Position numbers and translations under genes: made by a program. A stretch of 61,392 nt of DNA, filler included, from Choristocarpus tenellus KU-1152 (taxonomy: Eukaryota; Protista; Phaeophyceae), in NCBI GenBank assembly GCA_964200185.2. It is 10 parts of 10 records of this genome, joined end to end, with 100 filler letters (N's around TTAATTAATTAA, not from the genome) between each part and the next. Parts side by side here need not be neighbours in the genome. Positions count along the whole stretch, not along the records: positions 7,112 to 17,080 come from CAXNAD020003234.1; 9 more parts are not named here. One strand, written 5' to 3'. Shown here piece after piece: positions 7,112 to 17,080 of the stretch. The notes under the pieces are model-generated. The model worked only from the letters and a program-made list of their open reading frames with translations. It was not told the origin of the DNA and ran no database searches. Each line of letters starts with the position of its first letter. Position 1 is the stretch's first letter.

Positions 7112-10100
7112 CACCTCCACCACCACCTCCACCACCACCACCCGCCCCAACTACTCCCTCCCCCTCCACAGAAAACCTAGGCCACCTACCACCACATCCT
7201 CCATAGTGGAAACTGTAAACATAAAACCTGGAGTACGTAGGGACCCAAGGAACTAGTCCGGAAAATCTGATTGAAATACATTTGCATTTAGAGCCCTTGA
7301 GCATGCTGTCAAAAATTAACATCGATTTCAACAATTTCAGGAGCTAACAATTCTTTTCGCAATTTTTCTCATTGGGGTGGGGGACAAAAGAAAAGAAATT
7401 TCGAAGTTCCACTGTTCTACACTTTTACTAAGCTAGGTGGATATTTCTGCCACACCTTGTTTATGTCGGGGCACTTCTCAAGAAGAGCTGGTCCAACCAC
7501 CCTCACACGTTGGCTTACTAGCATTAACACCATGCTCACTACAACCAAACTCAGGGATGGTGAGTGTGGTACTCGAGCCTATTTCAAACTGTGCTGGAGA
7601 GGCAGGGTGAGGGCGCAGCTGTTCTCAACGCATTGAACAGGCGGTTCTCAAAAACAGCTCAGTCGGACCAATCCCAGCCTTGGATGCTTGGTACGTTACA
7701 CACCACAAACCACCTTTCAACAAAAAAAAAACTTGGAGGTGGGGTGTGTGGAGCTCGAGGTTGTTGCGACAATTATTGCTGGTGATATGCATTTTTTGTG
7801 CTCAAAGTTCAATGAGGTAAGCACCCGACAAGATCACTATTTTTCTCCTTGAAGGAGTGATATTTAGTTCTACTCCCTGAGTGTTTACATATATGTATGG
7901 CATTACTATTTCTGACTTCTACAAATTAAAGGAAACAACATAAAAACACACAAGCCTATCACAATGGTACACATGTACACATGTACACACTTCAACTCAA
8001 CATCACTCCAGTAATTGTCCCAATTAACATTTATAGTATTGCCGGTTACGTCTATTTCCTTTAGTATGTTGATTTCCATATTCACACTTTTTGTCTGAGA
8101 TGTCCCAAGTGCCTCGGCTATTGAGCATTCAGATTATAATCTCATATCCTCTATCATGCCGCATGACTCTACTTCTGAAAGGAGATCCAGGCCGTTTGGA
8201 TCCATTAGTTGATCTCAGCAGAGATATGTAGAGTCATCACTGATGGTGCCTCCAACGAAAACAAACTTTCCAGTGTGATTGGCCTGAAGCCCGGATCTAC
8301 ATTGTGTCTTATACCCTTTTAAGAATATCGAAGCCATATAGTTTTGTCTTCCGCTTGGACAAGATCATCCTAAATGCCCTTGCCACTTCTGAAAATTCTA
8401 TCACCCTAGACAAAATGGCTTGGTTCTCCTTCTTGCACAGAACATTCGGATTGTCAGCATGCATGATAATGACTTCAGTATTTCGCAAAAGAAGGTGGCT
8501 CCCTCGAATCCAATGCAGTAGTGGAGGGGCCTCTGAAATTGTGGGAGTAGGTTCCAAATAAGGACCACACGGTGAGACAGATGAGTCAAAATAAACGAAA
8601 GGTACCCAGGTTTTGACAATTTCGCATTTTATGTCACCTTTTTCGATCTTTTGCAATTCGCCCATATTTCTGTGGGTGAAGTGCTAAGTTTGGCTTGAGA
8701 GCGTTGATCTCTCTATTGCTTGAAACTTTTTTCGACACAAGTCAGAAGATATCCCACACGCAAAAAAAAAAAGTCGGATGTTCTACATATTTTTCAGCAT
8801 CCTAAAAATATAAGTAGACATACAGTAATATAAGTCACCATATCTGGGTACTTCTTGTTCACTTCGATTGAGATATGGTTCCTCTTTCCTCCTATTTATG
8901 CATCTCTTAGTCTGTGTGTGTGTACCGGTATGGGTTGATTATTTGTTATGGTGTGTAGTATATTTCTGTGGTTCGTGGTTTGTGCATGCCCTTTCACATT
9001 CCATGGCATTTCTGATGACTTTGTGTCGTGATGTGGTCTTCGTTGTGTCCGCTGCAGAAAACAACGAAGCCTAACACAGAAACCACCCCCTGAATCTACC
9101 CTCCCACCTGCCTTGCTGGTGGCTAAGTTGAATGAGGATATCCAGTGCGCACCCTGAGTATATTTTAAACTTACGTAATGGGAGGCTTGTGTCACAGCTA
9201 CTGAATGACTGGTTCGGATTCAGGAGGGGTGACGGTGGGTCCGTAGAGGCTTTTACTTCCTTGTACCTGGGCAAAGAAAGCGGTCAATTGAATATCATGA
9301 GTGTTCTATCCAGCAACGCAGATTAACCAGACGAATGGAGTCCTGAAATCGAGGTAAGGAGAGGGAATCTACGCTATTCCACGCTGAGGAGCGTGAAGAT
9401 TGGGAAAGAGAGAAGAACCTGGCAATAATACCTTGGACAAAAGGTTGCCGTGCTTTGAGAGAGGTATAAAGAGGGTTCTTTCAGAAGTCTTAAAGGCAGA
9501 AGAATACTCAAGCCTTTCCTGAAGGTGATCATCTGAGGAAGTTGTTGATACACTAACTCTTAGAAAAAATTAGTTGGAAAGAGTCGGTGGGGGCAATGTA
9601 CCTAGTTGCATGTACCCCCTAAATATGTACAAGGGTGCATTAGCCAAAGCTCAGGCTACCCTGGAGGAATTGAGAACACCAAAACTGCATTACCTAGCGA
9701 AATATGCAGTATGAATAGAATTGTTGCACGTCATTGATGTGTCTCAAAGAAATTCACACAAGAAGAGACTGCAATGAGTCCTCAACAAAATCCATACTTC
9801 GCATTAGGTTCTTTCCTAGAAGCTGTACATAGTACGAACATGAACTGCTACTCAATCGAACAAGTAAAGTAAACCTCTCCTCACCAGCACTTATTAAGTT
9901 GATGTCAGCAGCGATCTAGAAAGGAGTACCAACAATTTTGTTTTACCCATAAGAAGCTATGACAACTAACACCTCTCTCTCTCTCTCTCTCTATCTATCT
10001 GCATACGTTCACACATGGAGCTCAGCACCCTACAACATTGTGTGCCACACTTCAAATAACCACAGAGTATACACATCTATAACAATAAACATGGTACATG

Positions 10101-10207
10101 GGGATAGGAGCACAGATCTGGAGTACACATCCATCATTAGAGATGAGGCGTAGGGAGACTCAGACACAATTCAAAGCATTGGCAGAGTTGTGAGCCACCT
10201 GTTGCTA

Positions 10208-13200
10208 TCATGCAGCTTTCCCAAACACATCTCTTTTAGGGGTGTTTGGGTACAACTCTTTCAAGTCCTGGTTGGCAAGGATTAATGAGCGGATAGTAGA
10301 GTACTTCCTCTCTCTTCCATCAACCTCTACCAGGAAGCTCCCGTTCTTAATTGGCACAAGAACATGTTGCACCTGAGTTGCAGTAGAATCGAGAGCAACT
10401 AATGAATCAGGAGCTGTATCAACAGTGCAAAGGGGCAAGTAATGTGCACTGAAAAACAACTCTAGTAAATGGAAGACAGACTTTACAAAGCATTAATGCA
10501 ATCTCTTTCTGATGAAACACTTGACAGAACAGATGATGACTGCATGTGAATGATTGAGGTTAGGCGAGCATACAAAGTCAGGAAGACTCCAGGACCTCTC
10601 TGCTAGAAAATTGGCAATTTCAGGCATGACCTCAAAAAACAAGTGGGATTCAGTGGAACAGTACAACAAAGTCAAGTCAAAATATTGACCACGGCATCAT
10701 AAATCCTTCCTACAATTGCACTATCTTGCTGAACCAAACTAAGCAACACAATTTCCACAGGAGGTCTGGGCTGCACAAAAAAAAATATGTAGAAAATACG
10801 TAAGATCGAAGAATATTTTCATCATTTAGGGTTAGAGCACAGGATAATACAAGCATCAATTACACCCAACAGGACAGGGATAGGCTTAGTTTGTGCGCCT
10901 AGTTCAAATTGACAAGACTTCCCCTCCCTTTTATCTCGACTACCCTATCAATCTTAGCTTTAACAAGATGGTACTATTTATTGATAGTTGTAAATGAGAC
11001 TGTCGGGTCATCAGACTTACCACTAGACAAAAATGAAGCAGATGTTTGCTTGGACAAAATACAACACACTACATTGACTGAGAGCAACTGCAGCAGTGCA
11101 GAATATGTGAAAGGATTGGTTGGTTGCTAGATGAGACGTACATAGAGTAAATGGCAACATTCCAGCCATATTTTCATTTGAACCGACGACCTGATACAAA
11201 TTGAACCAAAACGACACTGAACAGAAGTGTTTTGGTGAAACCAGTTTCTTTAAACGGAAAGTCATAATCTTGGAACTATACTATCTCCAGAAATCACTTG
11301 CTCTTTCAGCAATCAAAGCGCAGCAGTTTACTGGTTTATGATTCGTGCACAATATCACCAGAGTAACATTGATAATCACAAAAATAAATGCAATAAATGC
11401 TACCCAAGAGACCAAAAACTTGACATTGATGAGAAAGTCTGAATTAGAACCAACCTTGGGGGACTTTGATGCATGGACATAAACAATCACCAGCCCTGGT
11501 GTCCTTGTATTTGTGCTCGCACGCAACAGAAATGTTCCAGGACTTGACCATTGAAGGAGGACTTGTGACTCATCTCTGGTGAGGTGGAAATCAGAGATGA
11601 ACTCATGGTTCTTTGGGTCCCAGTACAATTTCTCCTGGCAGCGAAAGTGCAAGTATAGTTTGAAATGTGATTTTCTTTCAGTTATTGAGCATTTTGAAAC
11701 AACAGGAGACCACAATATTTCAAGGGTGTCATTTTAATTATCACACTCTCGATCATTCAGAGCACACACCTTCATCATTCTTGACCTCAGGGACATCATG
11801 GATTTATACCATGGCCAGAACTCTGTCACGAAGTTCTCACGCTTGACATATCCATCCGTGGTGGTTGAAAGTTGAAATGGTGACCATAAAAATGGTTTTG
11901 CTGCCTCCTTTGAATTGTACTCCTTATCCTGGAAAAATGGCAGACCGAGGTCCAAAACAAAATCGGTCTTAGTTCTGTATGCTGGTGAGCAGTGTTTAAA
12001 GGTCAACATATCAATCTCGCCCATTGTCTATAAAACTGCCCTATTCAGTCACCTCATACCATTTAAGAAGTATTTGAAATTTGAGCGTAACAAGAAAAAG
12101 AGCAAAAAACATGGCATGAAAGTGTTTCAGGGAGAAAAAAATTGAATATCAAGTATAACACAAACTGCTATTACCAATCACAAAAAAGAAATTTAGCTGG
12201 CACTTTTTACTACTAGAAAATGCAGCACACCTAATCTAGCTCAAAACCTTCATCACCAAATACACAGAGTACATGTTACCTGCAAACAGTGCTCCATCCC
12301 TCCAACCCCCATCACTGTAAAGAAGTGTTGCTCCAGCTCCTGACTTTGTACATGCTCTAAAGGCATTTGAAGGTCAACCTCACCTACTGCGGACCTCCTC
12401 CGCAGCAGTCTCCTACCCAAATTGGCCCACACTCTCTGCCCTTCAGTAAGGGGTGGCTCAGGTGTAGTACGCAGTTGAGATACCCTACGAAACCTTGGAA
12501 AATGTGTAACATCTGCTGACATCAAGACGTGACAAGAGTGCACAAGGTGAAAAGAAGCGGTGCATTGAAGGTTTATGAGCCAACGATGGCAGTACAATGA
12601 ATGGTATGAAGACATTAGTACAATACTGAATATTTCTTTTTGTGCCCCTTGGAGCATTCAACAGCAAAACTCTCGTCCTCCCGCGTCATGACAATTGCAT
12701 ACTAAGTATCAGGTATATCTGGGTCAAAGTGAAGAATAAAATTCAATTCATTTGACACTCACTGGTATTGTTGCACTCTTCCACTTGTGCACTAAATGTC
12801 TCCCCCAGCTCAAAATACCTGACGGGGGTTAAAACCAATCTGATCAAAATTTTGAGCTCATAGCAGGCACATTTTCATACCAAAGTAACGTTGGAATAAT
12901 TATAACCTATACAACTCTCTCTGGCACAGGGATTGATCAAAATGAATAGATTGTTGAAGATTTGCAACAAATGCTTCATTGGAAAATCCACAAGTTTAAT
13001 ATATTGTAAAGTGAGACGACTCAAGAAACAGAGGTCGCCAACACAAGTCAAACATAAGCATTTTTTCAATTCAACACTAAAAACCAGCATGGTATGAGTG
13101 AGGTGCAGTAGAAGAAGCAATCCATTTTGTATGTCATTTTGGAGAGCAGGGCAGTTACACTCTTGCTCACAGTGGTGATGCTATGGTGGTCAGAAAAGGA

Positions 13201-16200
13201 ACAGCCTCACTAAAAGCATGTAATACAATACCAATTTCCGACAGGACACCATCCTGTAAAGGGCTGCAGCTCGGCGAGAAGTCAAGTATATGTGTCTCAT
13301 ACAGAGCATGCAGCAATGCCAAACAATACCCAACAATACTTGAGCAACAGTGTGACTTGTGACATCAAAATTCTCCTGGCTGAAAGTGTTTGGATGGTTG
13401 ACTCAGATGTGGGCGGTACCTGCTGTCATTGGATTCAATCAATATGTCTCACGACTTGGAGAAACAGAGGGTTGTACACTACCTCGTAGCACCGTATTAG
13501 AATAATGTTGAGATGTTCAAATATGTTTATAAAACAAATTCGTGGGTTGGGTCAGATAGATCAAAATCATGTAGCATATACCTCCCTTCAGAGGCCTAGC
13601 GCATACCCTGTTCCAGTGTAAGTTCCAGGTAAGAAAAACAATGCTGCATGAAACATGTACCCCTATACACACAGCTTACAGCAACATGTTAGGGGTGACT
13701 GTAGAGCACATTCCAATCAAGGCAAACCCATAACATTCCACAGTGTTGCCCTTTGCACACATATGCTATGCATATCACCCACCAATAAAATAAAGCGCAT
13801 CAAGGACAAATTCCCGTCAAAACAACTTTTTTCAACTCTTCTTGTGTACTCAGGACTAGTTTTCAACACAATTGCTTTCGTCACTGATACAAAAAAGCAA
13901 CCTGTGTCTCACACACAACAAGGTGCAAGAAAGTTATGGGTAACCCCATTTCTCACTGCTCTGCTCCCTCCAGTCATTGAGACAATTCCTCACGAGGTCA
14001 AGTATTGCTGACAAGTCCAAAAATATCAGGAAAAAGAGTCATCACAAATTCAACAGAAAAAATACGTATAGAGTGAGAGCAAAGTTTTGTTGCATGCGTT
14101 GCATCACCTTTGCTTTGCCTCTGGAACAAAGTTGATGACAAAATCCTCCTCGTCCTTGAGCAAGTGCCTGTCCTTTAACATACGGCTAACAGCAATAATG
14201 GCACCTGGATGACCACCTGCATTGGCAAAGGTGCGAGTGAATCACCGGAATAAAGATAAAATAAATAAAGACATTTGAGAGTAACATGACTACCAACAAC
14301 CTGTCCAAGAGTGCTTCATGCAAGCAGTGTTGGCGTAACAATGAAGAATGAACAAAGCACAATCTTGCATAGTCTCAAGTGCATCACATCAACAGTGAAA
14401 GGCAGGCACTATATAATAAATTTAAAGTAGAGGTTCAAGCTTCAGGAATTCAGTTGCGTATGTCCCTTAATCTACATGGACACATCCACTAACTGGCCAA
14501 CCCCTCTTGCAATGACAATCACCTAGTGCCACGATGACCACACTATGGGAAAAAAGTTGGACACTGTCATTGTGCAGCAACCTGGGGATTTGGGCAGCCA
14601 TCCCCCCCCTCAACTCTTCCTCTGTAACCTGACATTTAAATCAACAATTGTGACCAAGAATCAACACAGGCGGAAAGAGCAAAAACAGCACCAGACGTGA
14701 GCAAACAAGACTCCTCAAAGGGGTAACGATAATCACTCTAGATGTGCCAATACTAGATTGTAGCAAGTGGCAGTTCTTACTGGCTTGATTTCTTAGTCCT
14801 TCGATGTCACTTACTGAAGTGCTCTTTGAGACCAAGAAAGGAAAACAAAAGAAGAACACTCTCTCATCCAGCATTCAAATAGAAATGGCTCAAGGATTAT
14901 TCATTTTCAGCAATGCTTCAATTGCACCTACCGTGGTCTACAGTGGAGACAATGACTCTGCTTTCAATTTGATAGTCTCATTACAAACCAACTGCCACAA
15001 GACTGTTGGTTATGGTAGATGCGGTCTGCCTTGTTGCCGTCCACCTTTCCAATCCTTTTCACTTTCAACTTCAACACAAGTTGCAATAGGAGCAAACGAA
15101 AGCACTGAGCAAGCAAACAACTGCACTAGACCCCTTTATCAAAGGGTAGGGGATGCACACAAACAAAAACAATTGTACTATTGATGATGGGATATTACGT
15201 AACACCAAACCAAAAGACAGATTGGTTCCGGAACAGACCTCGCTTCCCTTAACTTGATAGCATGATCATAAATATTCTACTCCAATTATTCATGCTTATT
15301 TTCCCTCTTACACAAGTAGATCTGTACTGCTACTATGTACTTTGAACTATCACCAAATGTGAATACTCCTTTTCTTATCATTCATACAATATGTGGAGTA
15401 AGGAGAGCAATTTGACAGTGATGCCAATGCCAAAAACAGCCTGTAGTAGTGTACTTGTAGTAGTGTACTGTACCTCTCGTGAAGCCGTTGAAACGAACAA
15501 CTTTGCAGCAGAGAGGTTATCTAGCTCGCTCACCATCACCACTTTTTCGCCTGCAATGCCCACCTGAACACATATGACAAAGGGAAACCCCATTCGATTT
15601 CAAAAACATATGCAACACATTCCACGGCACCATTACAGTGGGTACTTGACAATCAGTCGAGGCCTGGATCTTAAATCCACACAACTCATGACCGCACTCC
15701 GAATGTTATTTATTAAATATTCAATAGCTCCATGGCACACAACATAGAACCAAAGGCACAAGGCACAGAGGTTGGCCTGTATCACATCAGTGAGGATCAC
15801 ATCACCAATGAATGCTAACCTGTGTGACCATTGTCAAGATGATATGAAGCCTTGACACTCTTTGACGAACCTCTTCGACAAACGATGACAGCTTCACTGA
15901 ATTCCTATTGCCAGAAAAGAAGAGACAGGTTCAGGATGGAAAACATATTCCTTGTGTTGTCTGAAATTCAGCAAAAATAATTTTCATGAACAGAGATGGC
16001 ATCAAACCTGCCCAAGGCCCGAAACCTTCTTGGTCTACTACATCTGATAAGTTATTTCAAAAGCTGTAGAAAGAGAAAGTATCATGACTTCAAAATTTGA
16101 TCGTTGTTTTGCACATGGATTGAAAATTTTTCCACATGTAGAACCAACATTCAGACTTCTTGATGACTAGTAGCTACATGCACGGGTTTGTTTCCATAAT

Positions 16201-16392
16201 TGGCAAAAAAAGGGTGATAACACAGAACACAGTTGGCATCTCACACCTTACGCTACTTTTGGGCAACAGCTTATACCTGGAGTCCCTTATCAACCATGGC
16301 GAACAACCATCTAGCACTACTAGGGAGGGCTCGGTAGTCCCTGCAAACCTTGCATTTATGCACTCCAGGAGACGATCTTGGGTTGTTATTTT
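10208..16392 (-). CDS. STAND/NB-ARC-type NTPase fused to STAT-type linker + SH2 domain (multi-exon, 5'-truncated)
   Basis: Nine GT-AG, phase-consistent exons: 16392-16277 (KITTQDRLLECINARFAGTTEPSLVVLDGCSPWLIRDS, Walker B), 15904-15820 (KLSSFVEEVRQRVSRLHIILTMVTQ, RNBS-B/sensor-1 region), 15563-15474 (VGIAGEKVVMVSELDNLSAAKLFVSTASRE, RNBS-C), 14628-14523, 14216-14108 (GGHPGAIIAVSRMLKD, GxP), 12484-12280, 11928-11770 (FVTEFWPWYKSMMSL, STAT-linker-like FWxW), 11634-11455 (LYWD...LTRDESQVLL...PGTFLLRAS, SH2 core), 10372-10208 (VQHVLV...LKELYPNTPKRDVFGKAA*, like the STAT LYPxIPKxxAFG end). About 404 aa recovered. Extra small exons within 12485-14107 cannot be excluded. Confidence 0.85.
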
Positions 16393-16977
16393 CTGCTTTG
16401 TGAAACATGCACACAGAACAATGCATCCAGAAACACAGAAAATCAGTTTTCCAACCCATTGTCAAAGAGCCATTCTGCTAGTTAGAGGTACGGATGAAGC
16501 TTGCACACCCCTGAATAACAAGGACATTAAAAGACTCTATCAATGCTATCCTATTGACACAACGAAAAGATGGAGGTGTAAGGGAGATACTATGTGTTGT
16601 GATTTGTGGACACCAACCACCAGCTTGATTCACTTCAATTAAAAAACTATCAGAATTGGAATCAAAGAACCTCAATGAAATGGTTCCTTTTCCATATTTT
16701 ATTTTGAGTAGGTTCTATTCATCTCACATTTTTTATTTATAAAATCATAATTATGACTGTGCCTGAGTACTCTCAGCACATTTGGGGTGAGTAACCTAGA
16801 TCATGATATCACGGCAGTCCATCTGCCTATGTGCCCACCTACATAGGTAGAATGATGGCAAAGAAGACAAATGGGAGGAAAGAAATGAAGGTGGAGACCC
16901 CCTAGAGCAGGCAGAAGGGGTTGACAAGAGCCTCACTTGCAATGTACAACTGGAGTTCAACTGGTACTGGTGGGGTT

Positions 16978-17080
16978 TGAAACACATGGTCTACTAACGC
17001 ATAGCATGAAACACATGGTCTACTAACGCATAGCATGAAACACATGGTCTACTAACGCATAGCATGAAACACATGGTCTA
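16978..17080. repeat. 29-bp perfect tandem repeat (~3.5 copies) at contig end
   Basis: Unit AACACATGGTCTACTAACGCATAGCATGA, head-to-tail, no spacers. Confidence 0.95.

Follow-up and report, generated by a model that had tools for sequence, protein, structure and literature searches.

The window analysed here is a stretch of 61,392 nucleotides (nt), joined from ten parts of the genome assembly of Choristocarpus tenellus KU-1152 (GCA_964200185.2), an early-branching brown alga and not a unicellular protist. Positions 7112–17080 of the window are the entire contig CAXNAD020003234.1 (C3234; 9969 bp) of this fragmented, 164-Mb assembly, and C3234 carries the 3' two-thirds of an expressed, multi-exon gene on the minus strand, hereafter the target. 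With moderate confidence, we explain the target as an expressed member of a small gene family whose proteins contain, in this order, a CHAT/caspase-like domain, a diverged NB-ARC-like (STAND-type) P-loop NTPase, a short helical stretch bearing the GxP motif, and, at the C-terminus, a linker-SH2 module of STAT type. In this architecture, the SH2 domain would occupy the sensor slot of a STAND protein, and a phosphorylated motif would release the switch.

The gene model is built on a transcript. Three public runs of one study (X1, X2, and X3) hold the sequence of the target: X1 and X2 hold it unspliced (0.99 and 0.89 of the sampled words), and X3 holds 0.22 of the words, roughly the exon share. 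A single 2306-nt spliced contig from X3, at a depth of 29, crosses all claimed exons, and the depth peaks of this run match the exon positions. Aligned with positions 10393–16392, the X3 contig skips eight stretches, each of which reads CT..AC on the plus strand and GT..AG on the minus strand. A ninth joint is given by the loose end of the contig at 11453, which continues into 10372 and downstream. We read X3 as RNA-derived because its contig lacks the nine introns exactly, while X1 and X2 keep them; the run type is thus taken from the splicing pattern. All ten exons derived from these joints have canonical AG/GT flanks, and the spliced frame is open and in phase from 16392 to the stop codon at 10208–10210, a length of 432 codons. 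The mRNA contig extends another 673 nt 5' of 16392. At the other end, the 3' untranslated region probably extends to ~9874, judging from 497–499 contig letters that lie 3' of exon G.

An earlier, sequence-only reading of this locus had proposed nine phase-consistent GT-AG exons encoding ~404 residues. Its splice-site type and its phase-consistent open frame were borne out by the transcript, and every motif that it quoted falls inside a real exon; the exon count and the length had to be raised to the values given above. The joints themselves changed in several places. The junction that it drew between 14108 and 12484 does not exist as such, as 14108 joins a 56-nt exon (12818–12763) that joins 12512 in turn. 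Exon E runs past the donor predicted near 12385 and continues to 12280. The last exon starts at 10372 and not at ~10448, and ~25 residues previously placed inside the SH2 domain are therefore intronic. The exon between 15474 and 14216 had not been resolved correctly and is found at 14628–14523. The sequence-only reading had also asked whether the exons at 14108–16392 and 10208–12484 might belong to separate genes: the X3 contig carries the exons at 14108–16392 and 10208–12512 on one transcript. As had been pointed out, the listing of open reading frames on the minus strand contains fragments only.

Searches with the target were carried out exon by exon, with the exons as separate alignment rows, or through database proteins and loci. 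By sequence comparison, the C-terminus of the target is a STAT-type SH2 domain preceded by the last linker helix. Exon F (11770–11928; X3 joints) encodes the last part of the linker with the F-W-x-W helix, which in STATs lies directly before the SH2 domain, and exon G (11455–11634) encodes the N-terminal half of the SH2 domain with helix A and strands B and C. Exon H (10208–10372), whose acceptor and frame fit, encodes the C-terminal half and the STAT-type tail motif, and the protein terminates five residues past the SH2 domain. Taken alone, exon G matches Pfam SH2 with an expectation value (E) of 0.0036, under the 21-bit cut-off, and its best phmmer matches in the PDB are STAT1 and STAT3 (E 0.28); exons F and H, searched singly against the PDB with phmmer, gave nothing useful. 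Exon H, searched against the C. tenellus genome, picked out an open frame without introns on contig C3769, which is the C-terminal exon of an unnamed protein product annotated by NCBI (P0001). Exons G and H are collinear with the SH2 domain on C3769 (exon H pairwise E 1.6e-7).

Profiles built for this region place the domain among the STATs. An SH2-region profile in which exon G, exon H, and part of exon F of the target each formed a row of their own matched 221 SH2 sequences in the PDB, led by STAT3 (E 2.1e-7) and followed by STAT2, STAT1, STAT6, and STAT5, with Dictyostelium STATa slightly lower. The first 19 PDB matches are all STATs; SHP-2, p85, and other SH2 proteins appear from 1e-4, and the alignment covers the tail motif shared by STATs. 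A family profile made from P0001 and two further relatives (P0002 and P0003) retrieved nothing but STATs from the PDB at E <= 0.01 (21 sequences; Dictyostelium STATa 3.7e-9, STAT5A 3.4e-8) and aligned with the whole linker domain and the SH2 domain of STAT5A (366–549). Using hhalign, single target exons were placed on this family profile, in P0001 residues, at 15–37 (exon C), 72–103 (exon D), 205–238 (exon F), 263–280 (exon G, P 0.001), and 306–347 (exon H, P 6e-6), and in none of the five cases did any of 40 shuffles reach the score. In exon G, the residues expected to bind phosphate are all conserved: the betaB5 arginine (F-L-L-R-x-S), the serine at +2, and a basic residue in helix A. The F-W-x-W helix of exon F, which is specific to STATs, and the tail motif L-Y-P-x-x-P-K of exon H align with STAT3, STAT5, and STAT6.

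Two exons lie between the NTPase part and the linker end. The first is exon D2 (12763–12818), the 56-nt micro-exon, which is fixed by the X3 joints 12816/14106 and 12512/12763, canonical flanks, and the correct phase. It is followed by exon E (12280–12512; X3 joints), a 77-codon spacer rich in Arg, Leu, and Glu that occupies the place of the first half of the STAT-type linker domain in the paralogue family. Exon E has no match among 1.84 billion representative proteins, and hhalign finds no signal between it and the family profile. A complete STAT linker domain is clear in the paralogue family, and in the target its first part has no detectable counterpart.

The N-terminal exons are moderately supported as the Walker B-to-GxP part of a diverged NB-ARC-like STAND P-loop NTPase. 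Exon A (16277–16392), whose 5' limit lies beyond 16392, encodes a helix and the Walker B strand that follows it (hhhhD-G-C); it is defined by the X3 joint 15903/16276, its AG/GT flanks, and its phase, shares 64% identity with the corresponding exon of a paralogue on contig C3188, and aligns with the Walker B region of C3769 and of two contigs from other assemblies (L015 and L016). Exon B (15820–15904; X3 joints and phase; 64% identity to C3188) encodes a helix and a hydrophobic strand at the sensor-1/RNBS-B position, and exon C (15474–15563; X3 joints; 70% identity to C3188) a strand and an RNBS-C-like helix. Exon C2 (14523–14628; joints 14626/15472 and 14213/14520) encodes the helical segment between the RNBS-C-like and GxP motifs; its length of 106 nt restores the phase, and it is 52% identical to C3188. 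Exon D (14108–14216; X3 joints), with 57% identity to C3188 and 33% to C3769, encodes the GxP helix (G-G-H-P-G) of the helical domain that follows the NTPase core. The extended motif G-G-H-P-G-A-I is present in the target and conserved across the family. On C3769, L015, and L016, the equivalents of exons A, B, and C form one exon, in which Walker B, the following strand, and the next motif align cleanly.

Three observations argue for kinship with STAND/NB-ARC proteins. First, the paralogues carry the Walker A exons. The exons on C3188 that are 52–70% identical to target exons A, B, C, C2, and D lie in the same order and are preceded by a canonical P-loop exon and an RNBS-A-like exon, and further canonical P-loop exons are found on C18937 and C3843. 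Matches of these P-loop exons to the Pfam families nSTAND1, nSTAND3, AAA_16, and AAA_22 are sub-threshold, and PADLOC returned generic P-loop matches only. Second, family segments match the NB-ARC genes of the same genome at the correct places and in collinear order. Three bona fide NB-ARC genes of C. tenellus were aligned as a reference for hhalign: the Walker A segment of the family falls on their positions 24–33 (P 0.02, a score equalled by 6 of 150 column shuffles), the RNBS-A-like exon of paralogues and orthologues on 46–64 (P 0.004; none of 150), and the Walker B segment on 96–119 (P 0.002; none of 150). Third, the N-terminal domain of the paralogues is CHAT/caspase-like, as described below. 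The conventional NB-ARC genes of this alga that served as the reference lie on C301, C11065, and C1147 and have long exons, with open frames of 429–458 residues and Pfam NB-ARC matches of E 1e-11 to 1e-16.

Upstream of the P-loop, pieces of three paralogues match Pfam CHAT with E values of 0.0013–0.0042, under the 24-bit cut-off, and one of them also matches Peptidase_C14 (E ~1e-3). The three matches cover different, collinear positions of the CHAT profile; a genome scan with that profile did not pick up the family. The caspase-fold His/Cys dyad was read at three loci: L020 on C3843 (3062–3715, minus strand), L005 (2923–3600, plus strand), and L021 (2269–2849, minus strand). The paralogue on C3843 keeps both residues, and those on C3188 and C18937 have both replaced, which suggests a split into catalytic and pseudo-protease subfamilies. 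C3769 ends in the same 29 nt with which C3843 begins, and the two contigs are oriented as the halves of one gene would be; the combined paralogue therefore reads CHAT, P-loop, Walker B, GxP, and STAT linker-SH2. This order is hidden in the database entry. In P0001, the GxP exon is joined to the SH2 domain, but the NCBI model is truncated, for its start codon is an internal methionine of the NTPase domain that directly follows the sensor-1 strand. The Walker B exon immediately preceding the model (L014 on C3769, 7522–7959, minus strand) is absent from the annotation, as are the CHAT and P-loop exons on C3843.

The fusion of NTPase and SH2 is conserved across paralogues and organisms. L015 and L016 are Logan contigs of SRR23272264 and SRR23274240, much richer in GC and with fewer introns. 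Their exons follow in the order RNBS-A, Walker B, GxP, and SH2, with the linker-SH2 module as a single exon, and five of the target exons (A, C, F, G, and H) have collinear matches in both (exon F against L015 at tblastn E 0.002). Since the same order is seen in the P0001 paralogue and in two other assemblies, the fusion is not an artefact. The domain assignments of the sequence-only reading fared accordingly. The NTPase-SH2 architecture was found again in the NCBI-annotated paralogue and both other assemblies, and the intact betaB5 arginine is conserved in the profile alignment. The STAT-type linker-SH2 module stands for its STAT-specific SH2 domain and F-W-x-W helix, and not for the first part of the linker, which is undetectable in target exon E. 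The N-terminal STAND NTPase stands at the level of motifs and profile–profile comparison, short of the curated Pfam threshold.

A bacterial or viral origin of the target was considered and rejected, given its canonical spliceosomal introns and eukaryotic paralogues. Other relatives are few. P0002 and P0003 were found in Logan assemblies made from other samples, and two further homologue searches returned P0001, P0002, and P0003 only, within a length range that leaves out full-length relatives. Absence from databases is therefore weakly established, because these searches are blind to relatives of full length and exon E yields no relative of any kind. Exons F, G, and H were also used to look in the C. 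tenellus genome for the SH2 part of the C3188 paralogue, whose contig stops short of it, and no additional copy turned up. C18937 diverges from C3188 as much as the target does and may be the 5' part of the target; a link between C18937 and the target contig was sought, and none was found.

How might such a protein work? In STAND proteins such as Apaf-1, NLRs, and bacterial Avs, the C-terminal domain keeps the switch closed until a ligand is bound, and oligomerisation then activates the N-terminal domains by bringing them close together. In the target family, the SH2 domain holds the position of the repeat sensor of NLRs and Apaf-1, so that by position the SH2 domain would be the sensor and CHAT the effector. 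The SH2 domain would bind a phosphorylated motif of a partner, most likely phosphotyrosine, and the nucleotide switch would be released; a phosphorylated ligand is argued for because the phosphate-binding residues are intact. The released protein would then oligomerise and bring the N-terminal caspase-like domains together, with proteolysis or scaffolding as the output, in the service of cell death, defence, or stress signalling. The gating of oligomerisation by phosphotyrosine is pure inference on our part. Its fullest form would be a brown-algal switch akin to the apoptosome or inflammasome, in which a CHAT-STAND protein oligomerises when its STAT-type SH2 domain binds phosphotyrosine, possibly with a degenerate sensor (the target) and a catalytically intact executor paralogue; we put this forward tentatively and hold it to be rather improbable.

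The same architecture could also run with the SH2 domain as an output or localisation module, which, in the manner of SH2 adaptors and Cbl, would tether the complex to phosphorylated partners or bring in substrates, the NTPase being switched in some other way. Such an arrangement would agree with the intact pocket residues of the SH2 domain and with the lack of a long repeat sensor anywhere in the gene, and the poorly conserved exon E could be the variable, ligand-facing part. It is nonetheless unlikely in our judgement: characterised STAND proteins are established to have the sensor at the C-terminus and the effector at the N-terminus, and the effector slot is already filled by the N-terminal CHAT domain of the paralogues.

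A further possibility concerns the target alone, as its subfamily looks partly degenerate. The Walker B motif hhhh-D-G-C is conserved in all five relatives, and a second acidic residue behind the aspartate is missing in the target and in C3188, C3769, L015, and L016 alike. At sensor-1, C3769, L015, and L016 read T-M-K or T-M-R, whereas the target and C3188 read T-M/V-V-T-Q; the target, in exon B, has a valine where the C3769-type paralogue and the orthologues have arginine or lysine. The sensor-1 arginine (RNBS-B, T-T-R type) is thus lost in the subfamily formed by the target and C3188. Because sensor-1 is degenerate and the protease dyad is probably lost in this subfamily, the target may be a non-catalytic sensing or regulatory partner of the paralogue that keeps its dyad. 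Taken to its end, the target would be a decoy, inhibitor, or sensing partner of the C3843 + C3769 paralogue that neither hydrolyses ATP nor cleaves. The missing acidic residue, the sensor-1 valine, and the loss of both CHAT catalytic residues in the nearest paralogues (C3188 and C18937), while C3843 keeps both, speak for it. The dyad loss in the target is, however, extrapolated from those paralogues, in both of which Walker A is intact. We regard a purely regulatory target as distinctly unlikely, and it would be compatible with the switch proposed above and not exclusive of it.

Several results weigh against the proposed switch. The target's own P-loop and N-terminal domain lie off the contig: nothing resembling a P-loop is detectable in 16393–17080, and an RNBS-A exon of the target was searched for and not found. 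None of the target exons, each searched alone, reached a Pfam NTPase family, which is expected because these pieces are 28–38 residues long. Genome scans with the NB-ARC and nSTAND1 profiles did not pick up the family, and the Walker B segment profile found no STAND protein in the PDB. The GxP helix resembles the GLPL motif by eye, but its hhalign match to GLPL of a C. tenellus NB-ARC gene scores no better than shuffles do. The region from the GxP helix to the linker, ~80 residues in P0001, contains no recognisable winged-helix/MHD module. Structure prediction adds little: the AlphaFold2 model of P0001 (residues 1–350), made from a shallow alignment, is poor (predicted local distance difference test, pLDDT, 52), and its Foldseek matches in the PDB, mostly SH2 domains, are weak (E > 0.4). 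This model contains a helical region followed by an alpha-beta-beta-beta-alpha unit. On the signalling side, classical tyrosine kinases are not known from brown algae. STAT-type SH2 signalling in Dictyostelium works with tyrosine-kinase-like kinases and without classical tyrosine kinases, and the C. tenellus genome has at least one exon resembling a classical protein tyrosine phosphatase.

Read at their strongest, these misses would make the NTPase a generic P-loop or AAA+-like module outside the STAND class, joined to a STAT-type linker-SH2 module in, for example, a STAT-like chromatin or transcription factor with no oligomeric death or immune switch. Besides the unreached STAND thresholds and the unidentified winged helix, the ESM Atlas model of P0001 points this way: over residues 11–350, its neighbours are whole STATs of the STAT5A and STAT6 clusters (template modelling score, TM, 0.5 by query), though the model is of low confidence and is a lead only; the same neighbours also fit a STAT-type SH2 domain. 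Against this stand the order and spacing of Walker A, the RNBS-A-like motif, Walker B, the RNBS-B/C-like motifs, and GxP, which match NB-ARC; the three segments collinear with the alga's own NB-ARC genes and above shuffles; and the combination of CHAT with an NTPase, which is generally known as typical of STAND proteins. We therefore consider a non-STAND NTPase highly unlikely. That two neighbouring genes or a chimeric contig mimic one gene is almost certainly wrong, for although X3 has no recorded run type and chimeras occur among Logan contigs, the nine joints fall exactly at GT-AG sites in a single open frame, and an independent NCBI paralogue model and two other assemblies show the same order.

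The architecture can be compared with four kinds of known systems. With the NB-ARC/AP-ATPase STAND proteins (Apaf-1, CED-4, plant NLRs, and the brown-algal NB-ARC-TPR proteins), the family shares a series of motifs, equally ordered and spaced (P-loop, RNBS-A-like, Walker B, RNBS-B/C-like, GxP), and the tripartite layout of effector, NTPase, and C-terminal module. It differs in the C-terminal module, which is a single SH2 domain in place of TPR, LRR, or WD40 repeats, and in the NTPase itself, where the target has D-G-C at Walker B instead of D-D, lacks the sensor-1 arginine and a recognisable winged-helix/MHD module, and misses the Pfam NB-ARC threshold. With the STAT-type linker-SH2 proteins (metazoan STATs, Dictyostelium STATa–d, and plant SHA/SHB), the target has in common the F-W-x-W helix, the betaB5 arginine, and the tail L-(Y/H)-P-N-x-P-K. 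Unlike STATs, it has its module attached to an NTPase and is without a coiled coil, a DNA-binding domain, and the C-terminal tyrosine for reciprocal dimerisation, and STAT-like reciprocal dimerisation is unlikely because there is no tyrosine-bearing tail. A true STAT was rejected as an identity for the target on the same grounds: it lacks the DNA-binding and coiled-coil parts, has NTPase exons upstream of the linker-SH2 module, and ends five residues after the SH2 domain.

CHAT-STAND proteins of bacteria and cyanobacteria, in which a caspase-like protease is fused to NACHT or NB-ARC and repeats, likewise carry CHAT N-terminal to a STAND-like NTPase, as do the paralogues described here, one of them with an intact dyad. 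Systems of the CHAT-STAND type are reportedly discussed by Kaur et al. in 2021. The bacterial proteins end in TPR or WD40 repeats, whereas the target gene is eukaryotic and intron-rich, ends in SH2, and belongs to a subfamily that has probably lost the dyad. The Cbl TKB region (four-helix bundle, EF hand, and divergent SH2 domain) also packs a helical module on an SH2 domain that reads phosphotyrosine, and it gives weak Foldseek matches across the whole P0001 model. These matches are not significant (E ~0.5, TM 0.17), and at the sequence level the profile favours STATs over Cbl by many orders of magnitude.

The sensors known from STAND and NLR switches are LRR, TPR, WD40, and ankyrin repeats and a few further repeat types. 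The STAT-type SH2 domain is the oldest SH2 lineage, and its function outside animals and Dictyostelium is largely unknown. With an SH2 domain in the STAND sensor slot, a phospho-reader would act directly on a machine that oligomerises under nucleotide control and carries a caspase-like effector, and the architecture could in this way tie phospho-signalling to a caspase-like death or immune switch. If true, NLR-type machines would have filled their sensor slot in a third, independent way, and SH2 domains of stramenopiles would have their first proposed functional role. The sequence-only reading was aware of no characterised system of this kind, and a literature search for STAND or NB-ARC together with SH2 likewise found no fusion described. 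Work on brown-algal receptors covers NB-ARC-TPR (Zambounis et al. 2012, PMC3341825) and ROCO genes only (PMC3341825; bioRxiv 10.1101/2024.02.19.579948), and pathogen-triggered cell death has been observed in brown algae (PMC12396294). The gene family would give the STAT-type SH2 domain a concrete, testable context in brown algae, where immune receptors have so far only been inferred. Automatic annotation overlooks the architecture, as P0001 starts inside the NTPase domain and the target apparently has no protein entry in the collections searched.

The remainder of C3234 is simple in content. The contig terminates at 16978–17080 in a perfect tandem repeat of 29 nt (3.6 copies), which likely caused the assembly to break in the intron upstream of exon A, before the P-loop exons; a search with this repeat for a contig adjoining the 5' end of the target found none. 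From 7112 to ~9870, no gene was recognised. The GC content of the contig is ~0.42, without strong skew, and its opposite end carries a 12-nt repeat of 2.3 copies at 7112–7139.

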